From Paragordius varius (Eukaryota > Animalia > Nematomorpha): 64,000 bases of DNA. The stretch spans positions 6,386,001 to 6,450,000 of the forward strand of contig OZ176053.1 in assembly GCA_964247055.1 (NCBI GenBank), in the 5' to 3' direction. The notes under the pieces are model-generated. The model saw nothing but the letters and a program-made list of their open reading frames with translations, was not told where the DNA came from and ran no database searches. How positions within the stretch are numbered: position 1 is the first letter of the stretch; every line of letters starts with the position of its first letter. This document shows positions 3,702-57,240 of this stretch, piece by piece. Both the position numbers and the translations under genes were made by a program.

Positions 3702-5242
3702 CAGGGCTTCTTAAACTTTTGTATTTCCGACCCCATTTATGATTGCGAGTTTCTTAACGACCCCAACAAATATAAAAAAAATAATAGTTTCTTCGAAATA
3801 ACACTTAGAAATTTTGTTGATAATATTTATCAGGATTATTTCGGTTTTGAGAGATTGACAAAAATAAATCTACATTTTTTATAAATTTCCATAACATTTT
3901 CTGATTCATACTAAAATTATACAAGATACTAGCTGGCCCTGTCACGCTTCGGTGTGGCGTAGTCTCACCGATAATTATTCTTAATAATTTGCAATAAATT
4001 GAGTTAATGGGGATAAAAAATAATGATAAACATATTTAATAAAAAAAATGTCTTTAATTATTCTTTTACGGGTTTTTGCATAGGCTGAAATCTTGTGTAC
4101 TCGAAATTGACCATTTTTAATCTGTCCAAGGGATATAAAAAGTAAATCATTTATGGTTCCTTTTTAAAAAAAGAATAATATTATACAAATTCCCCAGAAA
4201 TGTGTTTAACTGAACTCGTATGGCCTCTTAAGCTTTTTGAAAATTAGCTCCAAAACTACGCCTATTTTTATGGCGTTTCAGTTTTAGACCGGTAGAATTT
4301 TAACGACAGACCTATATAGAAAAAGCGCTGAGTTAAATTTGCCTTTATAGGGCAAATATTTGGAATCATCTTTGATACCATCGTCTCATGGGTTATTCGA
4401 AAAAATACCTCATCACTAAAAAATCGTTATATGATGGTTAGGGAATAAAGGCCCCAAATTAAGGGCTAATAAAAAACCCCGACCTTAAATTTTTACCTAG
4501 TTAGGGGTAATATTTCAAGCTATTAGCTCATATGGCTTCATATACTTTCTATAAATTAGCTTAAAAAAACAATATCTATATAGTGGCGCAGTTTTAGCGG
4601 GTATATCCTTACGGCAGATAAAATTAAAAAAACGCAAGACTATAATTTTGCCTTTTAACAGTGAATAACTTAACTTAGTGAATTTTAACAGTCTCATATC
4701 CTGGGCAAAAAATTATTAAGTTTTTGAAAAAAATGGCATTTTATGGGGGAACGAGTAAAACGAGAGTTTAAATTAAAAAAGTAAGCCGACTAGTTCGGCG
4801 TAATCGAAAAAAAGTAAAAATAATCATATTTAAAATCGATTGGTCCAACACGTTTTCCGGAAAATTGTCTCAAAGACACGATTTTTCTGGACTTCTGTTT
4901 TCAAAAAACCGTTTTTTACACGGGATGGGTGCCGAACTGGGAGCCTAATTCAAAAAAAGGGCGAAGGTATTGTCGGGGCATTCATTAATGATTATATTTT
5001 TTTGACATTTCGATTTGAATGGGTCTACCGGTTTTCCGGAAACAGATTACAAAGCAATGATTAGAATGAAAATGCTGGTATGAACAGCCTTTCCGAACCA
5101 GAAGATTTGATATATTTATCTACGATGATTGTTATTTTTCCTTATAATAATAATTTCACCTGTTAAAAACATTTTTCGTTAGATTGTATTTTTATCACTC
5201 GCGACCCCTAATAGGTTGCGACTCATAGTTTAAGATGCCCTG
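3702..5242. mobile_element. Non-autonomous hAT element carrying a nested Helitron-like insertion
   Basis: 16-bp TIRs CAGGGCTTCTTAAACT and CAGGGCATCTTAAACT (1 mismatch). Perfect 8-bp TSD GTTTAAGC at 3694-3701 and 5243-5250. Confidence 0.85.
3929..5060 (-). mobile_element. Helitron-like element, same family as 749-1622, nested in the hAT
   Basis: The plus strand reads A|CTAG at 3928-3932, followed by hairpin GTCACGC-ttcg-GTGTGGC. 4730-5055 is the reverse complement of the module at 780-1100. The 5' end is uncertain (5060-5077). Confidence 0.65.
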
Positions 5243-29058: not shown

Positions 29059-31486
29059 TTATGAAGTTTTTTTGGTGTATCCAATCACATTATAAGCGTT
29101 AACATGCATATGCTTCCGATCGCGCCATAACCATTTGTTGAGAAAGCGTCCAAGTATTGCCAGAGAAACGTAGAAAGCAAATACGACTACCAAAAATAGC
29201 ATTATTTCAAACGAACTTAAAACGTAAAAAATGGGATAAACCCATATATCCCCGGCGTATCTAACCCAAAACAACCTGCATAAATAAATATATATTAATT
29301 TTTAGGTTTTTTTGTATTTTATAGATAAGTAACTTTTTAGATGACTATGTCATTTCGAATCTATAAGAGTTGCTGGTAAAACGTCTTGAAAAAAACAAAA
29401 TGCAAAAAATGTGCAAACAACTTTTTTAATGGAGCTTATGATCATTAGGCATGGCTAAATATGTACAATCTTTAACCAAAAAAACCATGTTATCAGTTAT
29501 AATAATTTTTGTTTTTATATTTTATATATTGTATTTGTTTAAAAATCAATATTTATGCTTATAAAACAGGCTTAAAATTCATTTTAAAAATTTGCCCATT
29601 TAAATTAAATAGTGACAAATATAATATAATTGAGCATTATTGGTAAAAAACAGACTACTAATCAAAAATATGGATAAACAATTCAAACAAAGCATTCAAA
29701 GTAGTCTAAATCAAATGCCCAAATTTTATTTCCGTAAAACTAAACTCCCAAAATATATCAAACGAACAGATAATAAATGAGAGGTCACCAAAAAATATAG
29801 GGCCATATAAATAAATATTATTTTCAACGTTTCATCCTACAGTGTGGAACATTAAAAGGAAAATACGCTAACTGGCAGAAAATTTTAATTACACAATAAT
29901 TATAAAACGATTATTAAAACCAATTATAATATATTACAGATTAGAATTTTGAATGATTATGATAAATAAAAACGAATTGTCTTTTGCTTATTATAATTAT
30001 GTTTTTATATAAACAAAATAATAACTAACCGTTAAGTTATAATCCAATATACATGTAGCGTCAATAAATAAATACATATGTCGAAAAATTGTGGTCTGTA
30101 AACTATTTTCGCCATATTAGATTTAATCATGACTCCAGGCATTTCATTTGGGCAAAGATTTTATATTATTTTAAAGGGAGAAACCGAATTAAAATAGGAT
30201 GAAAATATCAAATTATTTAACTTAAATTTGGTGAAGATCAAGGAAATTTGGGTAGGACAGATATATATTGGTAAAAAGATGTTTAATGAAATTAGTATTA
30301 GTATATAATTGTGCTGCGAGGCGCATGCTGGTCACGGCCGCAGAGTGTTTCACTAGTTAAACCTTAGATTAAATAAGAATATTTATTTGCGACCTAAAAT
30401 TATCTCTGGGGTTACAAATTATCATGTCAAAGGTGCAGCAGTTTAAGCACGCTAATCATTCTATTTAAAAGTGCCCCTCAATGTAAAAGTCAAAATGAAC
30501 CGAACATTTCTACGCCAATAGAAAAAACGGCATTATAATGTTTCATTATGAGCTTGCAAAGACAGAAAATTATCAAGGAGACTACTTAATGAAAAGACTC
30601 CACATGAGGAAAAAAGCTAAACTGATTGACTGTAAACCATAAAATTCCCATTTTTACAGGATGTGGGCTGAATATAGGGGCAAATTCAAAAAGGATACAA
30701 CTATGATTGGCGCATTAACACTGAAAAACAAGCTATTACCAAATTAGAGACCTACATGCTATCCAGAAAATTATTTTAAGGCTAACATATTAATTATACT
30801 TCAATAGTTATCTAACATAGTATATCAACATAAGGTCCCCGTTATTTAAAAATTAAAATAAAAAATCAACATATAATTCCAATTCATATAAATTTTAAAA
30901 AGATTTAAGACTTACCATGCATAATATACAGATATAAATCCAACCAAGTGGTTAAATGATTTTTTAAAAGATGAATAATGATGTCTTGTTAAATATGAAT
31001 CTATTAGTAAAAATGTCACCGGGCATGTGTGCTAAAAAATTAATTTATGTTTACTAGAATATTATTATGCCAGAAAGGAATGTATGCATCCATGTATTCG
31101 GGGTAAACAAGTTCTCTGTTTATAAAATATAGAATCCAAAAAAGTAATGATACAATCTATCAATATATGGTAATAATACAGTTCCCAACGGAAAACATAT
31201 TGTGTCATATAAATAATCTCGAACACCTATTAGTCTAAACTCTTTTTTCCAGTGAAAAAATGAAAATACATCACTAAGCATCGCAATAGTAAAATATATT
31301 AGTTGAAGATGCTAAATTATATAAAATCTTTACCAAACACCATATTGTTAAATATTTATAATCACCGGCATAAGTCCTTTTTGAGGGCACATCTATCACA
31401 AAGATATGAAAATAAAGATCACATAAGTAAAGGATGAAAACAGTAGAATGAAAAATAAATTGTAAAAAGCTGAGGCTCGAAAACAT
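29059..31486 (-). CDS. AIG1: AIG1/ADTRP-family multipass FAHFA hydrolase, 5 exons, 239 aa
   Basis: The spliced product has KYLTIWCL-HLQLIYFTIAMLSD, RDYLYDTICFPLGT-IVSLLFWILYFINRELVYP, WHNNIL-HTCP and IWVYP. These align without gaps to AIG1 motifs as I recall them (KFLTFIDLVIQAVFF, RDWMLAVLAFPVGVFVVAVFW, WLNHGMHT, MWVYP). The catalytic Thr and His are retained. Exons (-): 31334-31486, 31180-31311, 31055-31156, 30916-31031, 29059-29275 (720 nt). Confidence 0.9.
31032..31054 (-). other. Ultra-short 23-nt GT-AG intron (AIG1 intron 3)
   Basis: GTAAACATAAATTAATTTTTTAG. Removal puts the catalytic His codon (31029-31031) in frame. Confidence 0.85.
31157..31179 (-). other. Ultra-short 23-nt GT-AG intron (AIG1 intron 2)
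   Basis: GTATTATTACCATATATTGATAG. Removal joins FPLGT to IVSLLFW without a gap. Confidence 0.85.
31312..31333 (-). other. Ultra-short 22-nt GT-AG intron (AIG1 intron 1)
   Basis: GTAAAGATTTTATATAATTTAG. Removal restores the frame; retention gives a stop at 31274-31276. Confidence 0.85.
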
Positions 31487-46966: not shown

Positions 46967-49900
46967 TCAAAAATTTTGCAAAATATTGCACAAAAAGGCT
47001 TTTCGTTTTTTATCTAAGAGATACTGTTGATGAAGTAATAATTCATTAGTTAACATATCATTGACAATATGAGAATTATCCTTGGATGATCCTGTAACAT
47101 CAACTAATTTGGCAGAAGGTCGTATCAATATACGCCCAAAGATTGAAGCTAATTATTAAATAATTAAATCAAATCCATAATGATTTTTACTTTAAAAAAT
47201 AAGTATGTGATAATCAATATAAGAGAGAACAATTTAAAATATACCTAATAATTCATAGCTAACGCCATTTTGCGAAGAATAATCTAACAAGCATTGCAAA
47301 AATGCGACCAAAAACTTAAGAGTATCACGATGTACTAGAGGCATTTTGTCCATTATCTAAATATGTAGGGAAAGAGTTTTATTTATTTTTTTAACCTTAA
47401 ATACGCTTAACAACATTCAAATACATCTAAAAGAGAAAAACCGATACGGGGGTTAAAAATTATCGTAAATATAAATCACTTTAATCTTATTATTACTTGG
47501 ATTTTATAAAACTGGGCTAATTTTAGCAATTGTGATGGTTTAAAATTTGTAACCAATAATAAAAAGTAAAATAATCATTAAAACTTATTTTATTGATTAA
47601 AATAATATCAGTACACAGTCTAAAATTCCAACGTTCCGCCGTAAATATTATAATTGAATAATAAATTTGATCTATAAAAATGTTGATTTACTTCTCCAAT
47701 ATGGGGAAAATTTTCATTAATATTCTTACGAACCCTCCTACGAGCAGGCGGAATTGGCAATGATGTTATATTGTTGGGGTTTTGTTTGGCATTATTGGTT
47801 GATGCATGAAATGTATGTGTTGAATGATGATTGTGATGGTCTTTAGTTATTTGCCCTAATATATTTATCAAAGTAAAAATGATTGGAATGCCTTTTTTTT
47901 AAATGAGACGATTGGCAAAAAAAATATTAAAACAGTAATGAAACTGATTTTAAAACCGAAAAAACCTTTAAACGGTCCTGAAGCCGTATATAATTTGTTT
48001 TCTTTTTTAAATCAATCAAATATTGGCTTTTTTATTGGAATTTTATTATAAAATTATTAATTGTTAAGATTTTTTCAGAAAAAATATAATATATTTATAT
48101 TTTTATGGTTAGACGGTAAGATTAAATAGACAATAAAATAAAACAAATTTTCCTAATATAACATTTCGTTTTAGGCTAATAAATAAAAACGTAAATTGGT
48201 AACATAAAACATTATATGCAATTGTAATCATAAATGTTATAAAGGAAAAATCGCGGTTCAAAAAAGTATAGCTGTATTAAAAAAATATTTGTCCTCTATT
48301 TTCTTTGTCTAAATATTTTAAATTTTTGCTATAAAAATATTTTATTTTATCACACACTCTAATGACTAAAAGGCATATCAAACCTTCTAAATTAGTTTCA
48401 TCAACCTCTTCATCAACGTGCAAAACAGTAGAAACCAAATTTTCATAAAATTTGACTGGAAAGACGGGTTCGCGCAAAGCTTCGAGAAATATTATAAGCG
48501 CATCGCAAATGGAATGGACGTCGCATTCTGTAATATGGAGAGATTAAATTTATTTTTTTCCCCATAAAATATAAAAATTGAAAATATAATCAAAACGAAA
48601 AAAATATACATGTAAAAGTCATAACTCTTCTTTAAAAAGGAAATAATAATATATGAATGATTTCAAATGCAAAAACAATAGAAAAAATTAAGAGACAAAC
48701 AAACATGTTTAACTTTAAATTATAGTTATGATACCTTTAATTAATGAGGTGCCAAAGTCAAGCGAATCTCGAATTACATTTATCTCTTCGATTGGCCCAG
48801 GTTTTTGAAACAAATCTGGCTAAACCAAAAATTTAATTTTCTCATAAGTTTAAATTTTAAATACTTAAACAAAATTTATTAATTGAACCTAACTCGCGCC
48901 GTTAATAACACTAATCTTCCTGATAAAATGTATTTTATTGATTATTTGAAAAAAACACCCTATTTTAATTTAAAACCTTTTATATTATTGATATACTAGC
49001 TGTATATTCAACCCTAAGAAAGCCATCTATAAAACCCCTATATCTTACTGATTTACAATATGGTGTTTTTATTTGGGGATTATTCTTTTTAATGGTTAAA
49101 ACTTAGCTTTAGAAGTTGGCTATGACCTTATTTTTGTCCATATAAATAGATTGTATTGCAGTCTTATAATGACAAATTTAGCTTGTATATACATTATTAA
49201 ATGCCCTTTGTAAATTGATTATATATAAATTATGTATAATGGTTAAAATATACCGCTTTTATCCCTCGTTCCAAAATTTGTGCTACCATAATCCAAATTT
49301 CGCACGGGACATGTGCGTTGAGATCTAGGAGCGAAAATGATAAGTAATTTTTAGATTCTATATATTTTATTGCATCCTTTTTATGATTTTGCAGAATAAG
49401 ATTGGTCGGGATATCAGTTTGCGCAGTGGGATCATTTACTGCATGTTGGGATAATTCGTCGTCAAACTACATTGCAATATGGTAAAAGTATTTAAATTAT
49501 TGCATACATGAAAATATGGAATCATAAACACAAAACAAGACTAATATTTCTTTGTAAAGATCAAAAAATTTTAACCTTGATTTTTTTATGCATAACCAAT
49601 TGTTTGAGTCCCATAATAGGGAATAGATATGTAAATTGACGCCACCTCAAATATATAGCAAATTGTGATTATTATTTAGGTTATATAAAATATCAATTAA
49701 AAAGTATGGATGTCTACAGGAAATGTGAAATTAATTTGGAAAAACCCCAAGTCCAATAGTTGTGTAATAAGCTAACACGCACGAAACTAGTAATTACCAT
49801 TGATAATAGTTTTCTTGTATCGCTTTATATTAAATTTTTTATTACAATTTGTTTTTTTAGCAATTTTGCAATTTTTTATTGTTAATAAATTACTATGTAA

Positions 49901-52693
49901 TTGTAAAAAACTTACATATAGTTAAAATAATTGTTTCATGTTACAATTCACACAAAAATTAATAAACTTAATAAATTCGTTTTTTATTTATATAGAAATT
50001 CGGATAATGATATGAAAAAATTAAAACCAAATCTATCAACGGTTTTTCAACCGCACTATGGTAGGGAAGAGCGCCCTTTTCCACCATTTCTTCCAAAGAT
50101 GCTCCGAAACAACTTTTTACATACGTACCGATAACCGATATGTGTAAAGGGCAACGGATATTTAACAAAGAGTTAAGGTTAATAAACTTAAAAAAAGGGG
50201 TAAACTATACTTTAAAAGTTGTATAACAAAATATATGAAAAAAAAGGATATGAAAAAATCTTTTCCGTTTTCCAAATGCAATATAAGTATATCGTCAAAT
50301 GAATCAGCGCCAGAATTCAAGAGGGGTGCTTGTGTTTTTGTGACGCAACATGTGATTGCTATGGGACATTCTTCGCCTTTAAAAAGGAACAAAAAACTTT
50401 ATAACAAAGTATTTTTGATTTTAAACCCCATATAATGTGATTACAACTATCTTATTTATTCTTTTAGCGTAAAAAATTCCAAAATATCTAAATGTATTAA
50501 ACAAAAACATAAATGATAAAATGGTCTTATAAAACAAAATATATCCGTATTTTGCAGTTTTAATATCGAAATATTAATTAAAAAAATCGTTTAAATTTCA
50601 ATTGAATTGGTATGATAATCACCAAATAACTTTCTTAAATTTAAAAAAAAAAGATGACACTCTGAAAAGTTTAAATATGATTTCAATATAAAATTCTATA
50701 TTAATAAAACTCATTATTAATATGAAATATATGTTTATAGTATAGTTTATATTTTTTCAGTATTATTTTAATTTAAAACAAAATTTTTATTTTTTAAAAA
50801 ATATATAAAATATAGGTAATTTTTAATCTTAAAAACATATATTTTATTTGAGGGTGAATTTGAATTGTTCGAGGGTGAATTTCAATTGTTCAAGGGTGAA
50901 AATGAATTGTTTAAGGGTGAAATTGAATTGTAAATGGTATATAATTATTTAATGCCAGCCAAATAGATTGAGAAAATTAATTATTGAATATATTTATTAA
51001 TCAAAAGCAAACTTAATATTTTGGACAAATATACAGTTATTAAAAAAACTTACCTGGGTAAATAAAATTAGATTCGGCATATTTGTGGGGAGAAATCGAA
51101 AGCCATGATTTACATAAAACCTTGGTACCAAATTTGGGTGTAAATTCGAATTGAAGTGGGACCTGTCCGACATTCGTCAAAGTGATATGTTTAGTTTTCT
51201 TCTCCATGAAATGCGTTTTATTAAAATTAACCTGCAAAAATATAAATATTTAAAAATTTATATGCGGCGATTGAAAAATTAATATATATTCGGATTAATA
51301 AATTATTCATTTTTAGTTTATATTTAATTTTATTTTTACGTTTGACAAAAATTACTTGTCGTAATGAAAATTCACTTTAATAAATTCATTCAATTTAGCT
51401 GATTATAATCCCAATATTAATATTATATATATTATTTTAAACAAAATATTAAAGAATGTGTGTAACCATTGAATTTATTCGTGATTATATAAATATTAAT
51501 AAAAATTACTTCCAAAGTATCTAATTCGGCATGTGGTAAATATTCATTTTCAATTTTATCAATATTTTTCATAGCATGCTCATACACCTGTTTAAAGCGG
51601 CTTTGGTCTGTAATATTGAGCTGTAAAGATGACAAAAAGTTTATGATAAAAACAAAAAGTTTCATTTGTGATTTTAGGATAGAACCCATAAAGACCATAT
51701 ATAATATAAAGAGCAAAAAATCTTTCATACATACCTTTAAATTAAACAGAGCGCTAACTGGTTTATGATCACTGAGCCTTAATTTTGGATGACTTCGATA
51801 CCGGATAAGAATAATTTTTTCAGGATTCAGGGATCGCCATAGAATTCTATCACACCATGAAGGGACACGTGCTTTTTCACTGAGTACAAAATAAAAATTG
51901 TTTTTAATTCATTATAATAATCTCAACAATAAATTTGATAGATATTTAAAACATAAATTTTGGTATATAGTTATTTCGTTATGCGTATAATTATTTATAA
52001 AACATTAGGATATATATTAGTAATCATAATGATTTAAAACAAATTTATATAAAACTAACCTAGTATCATAATGATCAGTTCCCGGATCATATTTATAGGT
52101 TGGGGGGAAATCAATGGGTCCCTCTTCGAAACCGTCAAATATTCTTCCGAATTCTTTTTGGCGAGATAACTACAGAAAATAATATTTATGTAAGGCCGAT
52201 TGAAATAAATATTAACACAAAAATTATGCGCCAAATACTTAATATTGAGCATTTTAAACTAAAAGTAAATTAATATTTTGAAGTTAGGTAACTTAAATTA
52301 TATGAATAAAGAGTATGTGAAAAAAATAGTTGACAAATCGTTATTTAATACAAAAAAATATTTTCTAAAAATTAAAACAGATCATATTGGAATGTTTTCA
52401 TATTATTAATTATTCATCAAAATAAATCACTTGATCAAATTTCATGAGCGTATCAATTTGATTGTTTGATATTTGTTCCTTAGCATGTGATTGATTATCG
52501 ATATCGATGCGGTAATTTAGATCACCAAACCAAAATAAGTAACTATTTTTAATTTATGTAGCAACAAAATTGTAATAAATTAAAAAGACAAGGATAATAA
52601 ATATTTTACTCATGATCCAATATACTAATGCCACCAAATTGATTGAATTGAATTTTATTGGCTATATCATTATAATCCTATCGAAAAAAAAAC

Positions 52694-52730
<37 letters not shown>

Positions 52731-54647
52731 AATTAAAAATTCATTTATCGAACTTGATTCCGTCTTTCCAATTCATCGGGATGTGCAGCAAAATGTGAAT
52801 TGACAAAACACAAAGGCGTTCCGTATAGAGTAAAACGGATGGCAACACCACCTTTATTTCCCTATTAAATTAAATTTAATGTTTAATAATGAAAATTTTC
52901 AATATTTAAGTATTAAAATTTATATTTTGTTTTTTAGGTGGCAAAATAAATTTGCCCATAATTAATTATACGGAATTAATGATTTTGCATATGTCAGATA
53001 TATATATGACAGAGAATTGTTATGACCAATCTACAATGTGAAAATGATAAAAAAAATAATAATAGCGTAAAAATGAAAAAAGTAAAACTCTATATATAAA
53101 CATTTTCTTAAAAATGAAAAAAAGTCATCTGGAGATTTTTTATTTCATGTTCGATTTAATGTTTACTGTTTTGTTGGCACAATCGAATGTAATTATCAAA
53201 GAAAAGGTATACCATTTTTCCTAGCAGACCTGTCCCAATCGTTTCACTCCCAATGTCACTTATGTGACGCAATAAATCCTTTTTGACAAACACCACCAAC
53301 ATTATACCTACATATATAAGACAAAACAACCATTTAAATACTTAATTTCTACTTTTATAACAAAACAGAAATTCAAAGTACTCTTGCCGCTTATTGTAAA
53401 ATAAAATTTAACATGCAAATATGGATGAAAAATGGGAATGACCGTATTATTAAAACGTCATATTGATAATTAAAATTGAATATTTGTTTCAATAATTATA
53501 CGGAATTAACTTACCGACAAGCCTGACCAAATGTAATTTTACGTAAGGAGAAAAGGGGGTAATTTCTTCAATCTCAGTATCCTTAATTTCAAGAGCAGGG
53601 TGCAATGATGTTTTACGCAAAGCATTTGGATGAGTTTTTATATGAGAATCTGCCATTTTTCCATCATCATTATCGCTAAAATTCTCAAGTTTTCTGGTTA
53701 AATTGGTGACTAGATGGCCCGCCGAAGACATGTCTGTATTATCATCTATTAAAGAGGCTCTTGGTGTGCTGTAACGAGAATGTGAAAGTATACTATCATC
53801 AGATGCCAAATTTAAGGCCTCTAACCCAATATCTGATGGAGGGTGGTGTGTTGTACCTATATATTGAATGATAAAAAATGTTGGTTTTTGATAGAATAAT
53901 GCGAAACTTATAGTACACCATAAACTATTAAACCCAAAGAAATTATTGATCAAGATATGATTAATTTTAATTTTGCAATGCCAAAATTAGATCCAAATTT
54001 ACAACAGAATTATATACGTAAAGTCACATTAAAAAAACCTTTACCCTGATCATGAGATGAATATTTTTCTTTCATTCTGGACAGAATTTTGTCAGATTTT
54101 TCGGGCTGATCAGAAGTGTCTAAAAGAGAGGATGAGGAGACATGTTTGAGAGATGATTGCGTTTCTTTTGGCAATTTTTGTTTGTTAATATTTTGTGAAT
54201 ACTTTTTGGGACTGATATAGTAATTTTGAATATTTTGGCTAATGTTTCCCCATTTTTTACCATAATACTTGTTGTAATGATTAACAACTTTTCTTAAACA
54301 TTTATCACAAGCAGTTAACCATTCTGCTTCTTTGTGAGATTCATAAAAAATATATGCCTCGGTTCTTAAATCCAATTCCTGAAAACTAAAAATAATTTAT
54401 TATTAACCCCAGCGCAACAATATCGGCAGGCTTAGATGATTCTTCAGGATAATCGCCCAACCAAGGTGACAAATCTTCATTAACTGTTTGGCCATTAACA
54501 TTCCAAGAGCCAATAAAAATCCTTTGATGAAATTATATAAAACTTAATATCCTTTTCCTTTGTAAATTCACTTTTATGCTTAGACAAATGTTCTTTTATC
54601 ATTTCATCCCTGTCTATCACAGGTGGTTTCGTAAAGAATTTGCTCAT
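46967..54647 (-). CDS. OCRL: OCRL/INPP5B-type inositol polyphosphate 5-phosphatase with ASH and RhoGAP-like domains, 20 exons, at least 988 aa
   Basis: [89 protein letters not shown] motif [15 protein letters not shown], RhoGAP VPCEIW and [13 protein letters not shown]. Exons (-): 54544-54647, 54408-54521, 54045-54385, 53515-53856, 53213-53307, 52754-52861, 52610-52677, 52431-52542, 52060-52169, 51735-51879, 51510-51620, 51054-51231, 50252-50376, 50028-50141, 49254-49466, 48735-48819, 48384-48527, 47692-47855, 47245-47356, 46967-47148 (2967 nt). The start codon is uncertain; the frame is open to an acceptor at 54747. No CAAX. Confidence 0.92.
50142..50251 (-). other. U12-type (minor spliceosome) AT-AC intron, 110 nt
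   Basis: 5' site ATATCCTTT, branch-like CCTTAAC at 50172-50178, 3' site TTTACAC|. Removal gives GKDFF-ISVIGTY, a gapless match to OCRL GKDYF-LTISGNY. Confidence 0.85.
50705..50939. mobile_element. 5'-truncated copy of the small TACCATT foldback family in an OCRL intron
   Basis: Four 21-bp units (AGGGTGAATTTGAATTGTTCG-like) end in AAATGGTA|TA. The body matches 57990-58213. Confidence 0.75.
54386..54407 (-). other. Ultra-short 22-nt GT-AG intron (OCRL, inside the Gly of GFQE)
   Basis: GTTAATAATAAATTATTTTTAG. Removal gives DIVALG-FQELDL. Confidence 0.85.
54522..54543 (-). other. Ultra-short 22-nt GT-AG intron (OCRL, before [10 protein letters not shown])
   Basis: GTTTTATATAATTTCATCAAAG. Removal gives [16 protein letters not shown]; retention leads to a stop at 54495-54497. 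Confidence 0.85.
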
Positions 54648-55137
54648 TTTTAATTGATTTGGATAAGTACCATGCCAAAATGTATGGGGGTAAAAAGACC
54701 TCTGCAAAATTTTACTTTGAAAGTATTTAGCCAGTTCATAAAAGCATCTGGATGAAAAATAATTCAATATAAAAATTTATTTTATCTTATCATTGGTTGT
54801 TTTTTTAATATATTAACGCTTTATAAATATGTTTTTATTTAAAATTTAATGATATCAATTATTGTGACATAGTAGTAAATTTATTCGGGCGCTTCCAAAT
54901 ATTTGGTAGATTCTGTGTGGGAGGTAACCCCTGTCCCAAAACATATGAAACCGTAGACATGAGGTATGAAGCGTTCACAGTGGAGGTAGGAGCATTCCTA
55001 GTGCATTTTCTAGATGCCTCGATCCATATTGTGGTTCTCAACCTTTAGCAAAAAACTATTTTCATGAAAGCTGTTTTTTAAAAATAAAAAGCTATTTATT
55101 TAATAAAAAATTTTATTAGGGCTTGTAACTTCTAGAG

Positions 55138-55789: not shown

Positions 55790-57240
55790 TTCTCAGTTTT
55801 AAACCGGTAGACCCCTACCCACAAACCTATATGGAAGCGCTGAATTCTTTGCATTTATAGGGCATTGGAATCATCTTAGATACCATCGTCTCACAGGTTA
55901 TTCGAAATATCACCTCACAACTCAATAATCATTATATGAAGGGCATAAAGGGATAAAATAACCCCTAATAAAAACCCCTGACCTTAATTTTTATCTAGTT
56001 ACGGGTAATACAAATTTTAATGAGCTCATATAGCTTCATAAATTTTCTGTAAACTAGCTCCAAAACAACTCAATTTCTATATAGTGGCACAGTTTTTGGC
56101 GTGTAGCTCCTTACCCAGTGGCAGGTTTAAATAAAGCGTTGGGCAAAATTTTGTATATGGGGAATATCTGGAATTATTATGGATTCCATATGTTCCCATA
56201 GGTTTTTGGAAATAATGTTTCAAAACTTAAAAAATTATAGATTCGCATTTTCAGGGCGTAAAACTTTATTTAGCCACTCATTAAAATTCCCTATGTTAAA
56301 ATATTTGTTTCTTAAGGGGTAAAAAATATTTTAGGCCCTTATTGAACTCACACAGTGTCTATAGGTTTTTTGAAATTTGGCTCCAAAGTCACGCTGTATC
56401 GATATAGTGGCACAGTTCTAGACGGGTAGCCCACTACCCAGAGGGCAATAGATGAAAGACGTTCGATAAAAAATTTTGCCTTTATAGGGAAACACCTGGA
56501 ATCACCATTTATTCCATATGATATTAATCGTTTTTGAATGATTTTAAAACTAAATAATAGTACAATGATAGTGCATTATTCAGGGGGTGAAGGGCCTAAT
56601 TAAGGGCTAATTTTTAAAAACCGCACCACATAAATTTTTTCCTTGTTACGGGTAATATTTAAGCACCGATTCAACTCTTATGGCCCGATAGGTTTTCTAA
56701 AATTTAGCCCACACGCTATTTCAATATGACGGGCAGTTTTTAGCGGGTATCTATTTACCCAGCAACCAATATAAAAAACACGACTAAAATTTTTGCCTCA
56801 GAGAATACCTGGAGTTCTTATTTAATTTTTATGTTATACTTGGGAGAAAGATATATAAAAAAATTATTTTTGTGGACTTGGTTTTTTTGAAAAAAATGGC
56901 ATTTTACGGGGGAGGCCGGTAAAAAGAGCGCCTAAATTAAAAAAACGAGCCTACTATGTTCGGCGCAATCGAAAATAAGTAAAAAAATAATTGAAATCGA
57001 ATACAACACGTTTTCTGAAGAATTGTCTCAAAGATATGATTTTTGTGGACTTGTGTATTCAAAAAAACCGTTTTTTACACGGGGTGGGCCCAAACCGGGA
57101 GCCTAATTAAAAAAGAGCGAAGCTGTCGGCGAATTCATTAATGATTATATTTTTCGACATTTGGAATTGTATGGATCTACCGGTTTTCTAACAGATCCTA
57201 AAGCCAACATTTTCGATTTTTATAAATATATATATATATT
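55790..57240 (-). mobile_element. Third copy of the Helitron-like family, with tandem internal modules
   Basis: 56860-57230 is the reverse complement of the 5' part of 749-1100. 55830-56110 matches 4320-4610. The motif atagtggcacagtt...tacccag recurs at about 56080, 56404 and 56730. The 3' CTAG end was not found. Confidence 0.65.

Follow-up and report, generated by a model that had tools for sequence, protein, structure and literature searches.

Two 22-nt segments in an OCRL-type phosphatase gene of the hairworm Paragordius varius are very probably ancestral introns that have shrunk

Introduction

Introns shorter than about 30 nt have long been held absent from animals, and about 30 bp is taken as their lower limit in this group (PMC13644364). 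The question raised by a 64,000-nt stretch of the genome of the hairworm Paragordius varius (assembly GCA_964247055.1, contig OZ176053.1, positions 6,386,001–6,450,000; hereafter the window, to whose numbering the positions below refer) is whether two segments of exactly 22 nt, which interrupt the coding sequence of a conserved phosphatase gene, are such introns and, if they are, how they arose. The window is AT-rich (21–36% G+C in 2-kb windows), and the gene lies on its minus strand from about 54650 to 46970. As judged from its predicted product, it is an intact gene for an OCRL/INPP5B-type inositol polyphosphate 5-phosphatase with 5-phosphatase, ASH, and RhoGAP domains. We conclude that both segments are very probably genuine U2-type GT-AG spliceosomal introns of a working gene, orthologous to introns 8 and 9 of human OCRL and shrunken.

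Two 22-nt segments separate three reading frames

The two segments are located as follows (coordinates descend along the minus strand).

54543–54522, minus strand: tiny intron 1, 22 nt, GTTTTATATAATTTCATCAAAG, phase 2 in a Lys codon (AA/G).
54407–54386, minus strand: tiny intron 2, 22 nt, GTTAATAATAAATTATTTTTAG, phase 2 in a Gly codon (GG/T).

Read along the minus strand, with borders marked by slashes, the context of the first is ...GATATTAA / GTTTTATATAATTTCATCAAAG / GATTTTTATTGGC... and that of the second is ...GCGCTGGG / GTTAATAATAAATTATTTTTAG / TTTTCAGGAA..., and each segment has GT at its 5′ end and AG at its 3′ end. The three stop-free coding stretches that flank them lie in frames 2, 0, and 1 of the minus-strand translation: (i) the first stretch, MSKFF...KEKDIK, has its last base at 54544; (ii) the second, which ends in ADIVALG, occupies 54521–54408; and (iii) the third starts at 54385. 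Excision of both segments yields a single open frame that runs through the GSWNVNG and GFQELD motifs, and the spliced junctions, one directly after ...KDIK and the other within ...IVALG/FQELDL..., align to human OCRL without gaps. If the segments are left in place, stops are met 16 codons (intron 1) and 7 codons (intron 2) beyond the donors. Because retention of either intron shifts the frame and leads to a stop within 7–16 codons, only the spliced mRNA would encode the enzyme. The initial annotation of this DNA had given the coordinates, the 22-nt lengths, the motifs, and phase 2, all of which agree with the minus-strand reading and its frames.

No other GT/AG pair at the locus preserves the homologous residues. 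A 29-nt variant with the alternative acceptor TTTTCAG was ruled out since it reaches a stop, and a 33-nt candidate was ruled out by its non-homologous frame.

Correspondence with introns 8 and 9 of human OCRL

The gene model was searched exon by exon against PDB and Pfam. Exon 2, which lies between the two segments, and exon 3, which follows them, matched the catalytic domain of human OCRL (PDB 4cmn_A) with E values of 4e-4 and 1e-3, respectively. The Phe in FQELD (Phe276) is residue 63 of this chain; adding 213 to the chain index therefore gives the human residue number. The first full codon of worm exon 3 aligns to Phe276, which places the split Gly on Gly275; in worm exon 2, residue 2 pairs with chain residue 30 (Phe243), so that the split Lys falls on Arg241. 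Worm exon 2 has 114 nt compared with 102 nt in its human counterpart, exon 9, and the 12-nt excess presumably consists of four extra codons inside the exon.

The human borders can be read from a table of OCRL splice variants (Table 1, NM_000276.4), which assigns c.723-1G>A and c.824G>C to exon 9 and c.825-2A>G to exon 10 (PMC12142645). By these entries, human exon 9 extends from c.723 to c.824. Human intron 8 follows the second base of codon 241 (Arg; c.722/723) and human intron 9 the second base of codon 275 (Gly; c.824/825), and both are in phase 2. In the same source, skipping of exon 8 is written p.Met187_Arg241delinsIle, and p.Gly275_Phe276insArg is given at the intron 9 border (PMC12142645). 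Worm tiny introns 1 and 2 coincide exactly with human introns 8 and 9 in both position and phase. The phase-2 introns that the initial annotation had placed at the equivalent Arg and Gly codons of human OCRL are therefore confirmed by the published borders taken together with the 4cmn_A alignments.

Five more worm introns have human counterparts, as follows.

Worm 67-nt intron: phase 2, in the codon aligned to Glu415, equivalent to human intron 12 (c.1244/1245).
Worm 261-nt intron: phase 0, after the residue aligned to Gln452 (between Gln452 and Leu453), consistent with human intron 13.
Worm 180-nt intron: phase 2, in the codon aligned to Ser489, equivalent to human intron 14 (c.1466/1467).
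Worm 114-nt intron: phase 0, after the residue aligned to Gly534, equivalent to human intron 15 (c.1602/1603).
Worm intron after exon 10 (about 278 nt): phase 0, presumably equivalent to human intron 16.

Worm exon 10 and human exon 16 are both 111 nt long; this length and the presumed numbering of PDB chain 3qis are the basis on which we take the last pair to be equivalent. Five further introns coincide with human introns 12–16, and therefore the gene keeps most of the ancestral exon–intron structure. The 351-nt worm intron, which falls between a Met and a Gly aligned to Met352 and Gly353, may correspond to human intron 11, the border of which is left unfixed by the table (PMC12142645). Three worm introns have no human partner: the one inside a lineage-specific insert, the one in the Gly of VRLVG, and the one between Gln and Asp after ERRNQ. 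Human intron 10 (between Lys313 and Val314) has no worm partner, a worm intron lying 8 codons further on.

The presence of both introns in a protostome-type worm and in human is best explained by inheritance. The codon-exact match to named human introns argues for shrunken ancestral introns rather than for insertions, errors, or new gains. The earlier proposal that ancestral introns had shrunk thus gains support from the agreement in position and phase with human and from the five additional shared introns, shrinkage being the direction of change that we infer.

A compact OCRL gene with 5-phosphatase, ASH, and RhoGAP domains is found on a Logan contig of 9507 bases from an invertebrate. Its coding sequence is continuous at the Arg241 and Gly275 positions, and it has instead an intron in the codon before the Trp of ...WL; the phase-1 intron in the Gly of VRLVG, absent in human, is shared by this gene and the worm. 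Both introns have therefore been lost in some lineages. A word search for relatives with exon 3 gave no candidate, and one with the open frame of exon 9 gave only fragments of at most 62% identity, among which no hairworm relative was apparent.

Other DNA samples and purifying selection

DNA contigs from runs X1, X3, X4, and X5, which represent three samples besides the assembly, were aligned to the window. They cross the tiny and the ordinary introns alike, with no joints. Record 8 of X1 covers 53990–54900 with 0 mismatches, and record 15 of X3 covers 54367–54582 with 0 mismatches and 0 gaps. Record 24 of X4 and record 32 of X5, which come from the same individual, are approximately 5% diverged (50 mismatches in 926 bases), and all of their gap letters are explained by indels outside 54386–54543. 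Indel errors, which the initial annotation had considered as a source of the frame changes, are absent from this interval in the other DNA samples. The 22-nt length is real and stable, including in the diverged individual.

The differences of X4/X5 from the window amount to 105, of which 40 are listed; the synonymous count is a sample of these. All 10 listed differences in exons 2 and 3 (two and eight, respectively) are synonymous third-position changes in the spliced frames, a result with a chance probability of approximately (1/3)^10, or about 1 in 59,000. Because all 10 are synonymous, purifying selection acts in frames that exist only once both 22-nt segments are removed. In exon 4, which belongs to the lineage-specific insert, 8 of the 18 listed differences change the residue.

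X4 and X5 share their species label with the best-matching run yet are approximately 5% diverged from the window (compared over 52735–54900), and X3, which bears another organism label, is nearly identical to it. This label pattern suggests, as a lead, cryptic species or mislabelled samples. Sample mislabelling of this sort in Chordodes hairworms is the subject of a 2026 preprint.

Proposed mechanism and alternative explanations

We propose that the equivalents of introns 8 and 9 were inherited from the common bilaterian ancestor and that in this lineage both would have shrunk to roughly the minimum length that its spliceosome can accept, the other introns having stayed at 67–351 nt. The pre-mRNA would be read as exon 1, GT..AG, exon 2, GT..AG, exon 3, with the two segments serving as ordinary U2-type substrates at the lower size limit. 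The act of splicing, together with the branch site, is what we infer here. Mis-spliced transcripts would be expected to undergo nonsense-mediated decay.

Several observations weigh against this interpretation: (i) the two donors begin with GTT, and T at +3 is rare among ordinary animal 5′ splice sites; (ii) neither 22-nt intron contains a clear branch-site consensus; (iii) none of the five public runs that contain the locus is recorded as RNA, and spliced junctions were not observed, older possible-RNA runs under the same species label having yielded no sequence words of the locus; (iv) the 40 listed differences give no view of any variation inside intron 1; and (v) the gene on the Logan contig and a paralogue in the worm genome (L003) lack introns at both places, and therefore the ancestry rests on the worm–human match and parsimony.

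According to one alternative, the introns are real but spliced inefficiently or conditionally, so that retention is regulatory or noisy, as in microsporidia, in which very short introns have a median splicing efficiency of about 25% (cited in PMC13644364). The weak GTT donors would fit such poor recognition, but the exons are under strong purifying selection, from which it follows that correctly spliced mRNA is produced in sufficient amount, and we regard this alternative as unlikely.

It is very improbable that the locus is a decaying pseudogene with two intron-like frameshifting insertions. Although the unspliced reading is broken, the remaining exons are all open, no catalytic motif is missing, the segments occupy the human intron 8 and 9 positions in the same phase, and every one of the 10 differences listed for exons 2 and 3 is synonymous in the spliced frames. 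In addition, neither of the other two 5-phosphatase loci found in the genome is of the OCRL type.

Removal or bypass outside the spliceosome could take the form of somatic DNA elimination, as for the internal eliminated sequences of ciliates, or of translational frameshifting. The size and AT-richness of the segments recall the ciliate sequences; however, the ends are GT..AG rather than TA..TA, ordinary human introns have the same positions and phases, the four DNA runs all retain the segments with no joined form, and no known recoding can bypass two +1 shifts in succession across 22 nt that include stops. We consider this explanation extremely improbable.

Finally, an assembly or sequencing error, in the form of two spurious 22-nt insertions in a continuous exon, has nothing in its favor except the odd size and can practically be dismissed, since the X1, X3, and diverged X4/X5 contigs carry the same segments without indels, since GT..AG ends at known ancestral intron positions are not expected from error, and since data that differ by approximately 5% (X4/X5) do not come from one faulty data set.

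Composition and splice signals

The two segments have GTT donors, which are weak for an animal, and their acceptors are TTTTTAG and ATCAAAG; the 3′ end reads TTTCATCAAAG in intron 1 and TTATTTTTAG in intron 2. Their interiors are A+T at 34 of 36 positions, in agreement with an earlier description as almost pure A/T, compared with 81% in the longer introns of the gene (P 0.02), which makes them mildly richer. The 76-nt intron of the same gene is 89% A+T.

The initial annotation had proposed that a central run resembling ATAWATT/ATAATT is either a branch signal or base composition. Each of the five tiny introns in the window that are supported by homology, namely the two described here and three in an AIG1 gene, carries this pattern (P about 0.001 against composition-matched shuffles; P 0.012 for the three AIG1 introns alone), and the offset of the pattern among the five varies from 3 to 10 nt from the 3′ end. 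In a fresh test on two CCT genes, it was found in one of three introns shorter than 30 nt, and it was rejected as a required signal on this result. A TAAT-like element is present in the 22-nt introns, with a chance expectation of 44–69% of composition-matched shuffles. On this small test, the second half of the earlier proposal is favored: the central run is best read as base composition, perhaps with a loose TAAT/CTAAT-like branch element but no more than that. The ordinary short introns of the chaperonin genes carry CTAAC.

The 13-mer TTTTATATAATTT occurs twice in the window, at 54530–54542 and 31314–31326 (minus strand), in OCRL intron 1 and AIG1 intron 1, respectively. By chance, 0.34 copies are expected, and two were reached in 5 of 100 shuffles; the offsets of the two copies from the splice sites differ.

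With its flanks, the 22-mer of intron 1 is present as a single copy in the 110-Mb assembly. That of intron 2 is likewise unique, and its near-matches are no commoner than those of a reversed control pattern. A mobile introner origin was rejected on the uniqueness of both.

Architecture of the OCRL-type gene

The first eleven exons form an open frame of 550 codons in which every catalytic motif is present. Pfam PF22669 is matched by exons 6, 7, 8, and 9 (E 3e-6 to 7e-14); PDB matches to OCRL are also found among exons 7, 8, and 9, and exon 10 matches the OCRL ASH-RhoGAP structure 3qis. The parts of the gene are listed below.

54544..54647, minus strand: exon 1 as modelled, ATG at 54647, MSKFF...KDI plus the AA of the split Lys; frame open upstream to 54776.
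54408..54521, minus strand: exon 2, 114 nt, ending ...ADIVAL; counterpart of human exon 9 (102 nt).
54045..54385, minus strand: exon 3, containing the 4cmn_A match and then a lineage-specific insert.
53515..53856, minus strand: exon 4, the remainder of the insert; preceded by a 188-nt intron and followed by a phase-1 intron in the Gly of VRLVG.
53213..53307, minus strand: exon 5, ending ...GLLGKM; preceded by a 207-nt intron.
52754..52861, minus strand: exon 6, ending ...ERRNQ; preceded by a 351-nt intron; PF22669, E 5e-9.
52610..52677, minus strand: exon 6b, ending ...ILDH; preceded by a 76-nt intron that is absent from human OCRL.
52431..52542, minus strand: exon 7, ending ...KFDQ; preceded by a 67-nt phase-2 intron.
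52060..52169, minus strand: exon 8, LSRQKEF...GTDHYDT; preceded by a 261-nt phase-0 intron.
51735..51879, minus strand: exon 9; preceded by a 180-nt phase-2 intron.
51510..51620, minus strand: exon 10, 111 nt; preceded by a 114-nt phase-0 intron.
50252..51249, minus strand: two exons of an OCRL-like ASH domain, separated by an ordinary intron; PF21310, E 1e-14 and 1e-11.
48280..48543, minus strand: open frame with part of a RhoGAP-like domain; PF00620, E 3e-5, 24.3 bits against a cut-off of 24.5 bits.

The intron lengths are, in order, 22, 22, 188, 207, 351, 76, 67, 261, 180, 114, and about 278 nt; tiny introns thus make up two of the 11 mapped in the gene, and the others measure 67–351 nt. 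The modelled ATG at 54647 stands 34 codons ahead of the split Lys, level with human Met206, which is one alternative start codon in OCRL exon 8 (PMC12142645).

The lineage-specific insert comprises approximately 190 residues, sits within the catalytic domain (54290–53540, minus strand), and is divided by the 188-nt intron. Its part in exon 3 has only synonymous listed differences compared with X4/X5.

The intron at 50142–50251 (minus strand), after the exon ending ...GKDFF, starts with ATATCCTTT, contains CCTTAAC, and ends in AC, features that make it a probable U12-type AT-AC intron. CCTTAAC is approximately 27–30 nt from the AC, rather far for a U12 branch site. Thus, 22-nt, ordinary, and probable AT-AC introns all occur in one gene.

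The assembly contains two further 5-phosphatase loci, and of the three found only the present one is OCRL-type with ASH and RhoGAP parts. The locus on contig 3 is synaptojanin-like in appearance and has no intron at either of the places where the tiny introns lie.

Tiny introns elsewhere in the genome

The AIG1 gene in the same window contains three tiny introns.

31333–31312: tiny intron of the AIG1 gene.
31179–31157: tiny intron of the AIG1 gene.
31054–31032: tiny intron of the AIG1 gene.

The window was scanned de novo for GT..AG segments of 16–40 nt that join two open frames of at least 30 codons each. The scan recovers all five homology-supported introns (two OCRL and three AIG1), and the reappearance of the AIG1 introns upholds the earlier claim that the tiny-intron class is replicated in a second gene 23 kb away. 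At 22–23 nt, it gives 32 candidates compared with 14–27 for five control dinucleotide pairs, a difference too noisy to serve as evidence. Similar stretches (GGGAGCCTAATT.AAAAAAG with flanks) at about 1056–1089, 4929–4966, and 57084–57122 are false candidates of the scan, and the stretches around GGGAGCCTAATT suggest a dispersed repeat family.

Outside the window, a TCP1-alpha-like gene (L005; G000:C6:5287100-5288100, minus strand) has a 24-nt phase-1 intron, GTATAAAAATTTGTTAAATTATAG, between ...DIRSQN and VTACKTIANIVK; its next introns are 60 nt long, with CTAAC about 24 nt ahead of the AG, and 71 nt long. A second CCT gene (L006; G000:C2:9804400-9805600, plus strand) has three consecutive short introns at its 5′ end, of 27 nt (after ...IAAAK), 28 nt (after ...RAMLK), and 36 nt (after ...AILRE). 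The 27-nt intron of L006 and the 24-nt intron of L005 are multiples of three in length, and each contains an in-frame TAA. Across nine chaperonin genes, successive exon matches are mostly separated by hundreds of bases.

Among the eight tiny introns examined, two start with GTT and six with GTA, with no further consensus in this small sample. The OCRL pair is a further well-supported instance of this tiny-intron class rather than a new class.

Implications

It is likely that the lineage evolved a discrete class of 22–28-nt introns by shrinkage in place, which would be spliced by an otherwise ordinary animal machinery beside 60–350-nt, kilobase, and U12-type AT-AC introns of the same gene. If this is true, introns shorter than 30 nt would have arisen a third time independently among animals, and for the first time in a genome without global compaction, and one could ask what decides which intron becomes tiny; here, these are the first two of the modelled gene.

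Each of the 22-nt introns can be matched at the level of the codon to a named intron of a human disease gene with known exon borders, and the gene is a compact test case for the shortest intron that an animal spliceosome handles. The present analysis adds a second gene in the window, a match to human that is anchored in the literature, and polymorphism data that point to selection on the spliced frames. Standard gene prediction programs that impose a minimum intron length will split this gene, as they will similar ones.

Comparison with known systems

A survey of 51 animal genomes (PMC13644364, Mol Biol Evol 2026) detected introns shorter than 30 bp in no animals other than myxobolid myxozoans and Dicyema japonicum; its species list was left unchecked for hairworms, and a hairworm genome preprint does not mention introns. 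The introns of Myxobolidae and Dicyema have conserved positions, reduced splice-site motifs, and median lengths of 22–27 bp, and their genomes are compacted (PMC13644364). As in the worm, they are AT-rich GT-AG introns shorter than 30 bp at conserved positions in a parasite lineage. Their motifs are reduced to GTa ... AG only; those of the worm may likewise be weak, as judged from a small sample of eight introns. Whereas nearly all introns of Myxobolidae and Dicyema are tiny, those of the worm are a minority class, two of 11 in this gene, with a probable AT-AC intron in the same gene.

Human OCRL introns 8 and 9 resemble the worm introns in that they lie in the same codons and in phase 2, flank the exon with (G/S)WNVNG, and precede GFQELD. 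They differ from them in that the worm introns are 22 nt long, far under the limit of about 30 bp for animals, the worm exon is 12 nt longer, and human intron 10 is not shared.

Introns of similar length occur in unicellular systems, for example introns of about 20–33 nt in Paramecium and of 18–21 nt in the Bigelowiella nucleomorph. In Paramecium, intron retention leads to a frameshift or a stop, which is thought to let nonsense-mediated decay police splicing. The ciliate and nucleomorph introns are like those of the worm in length and in that retention gives a frameshift or a stop. They belong to unicellular organisms whose whole intron population is tiny, by contrast with the worm, an animal with a mixed population. 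The introns of Stentor measure 15–16 nt (PMC13644364).

Like the worm, animals with ordinary minimal introns have a discrete short class plus a long tail within the same genes. The worm class, at 22–28 nt, is about half the usual lower limit of these minimal introns, which in ordinary animal genomes form a peak at about 50–90 nt.

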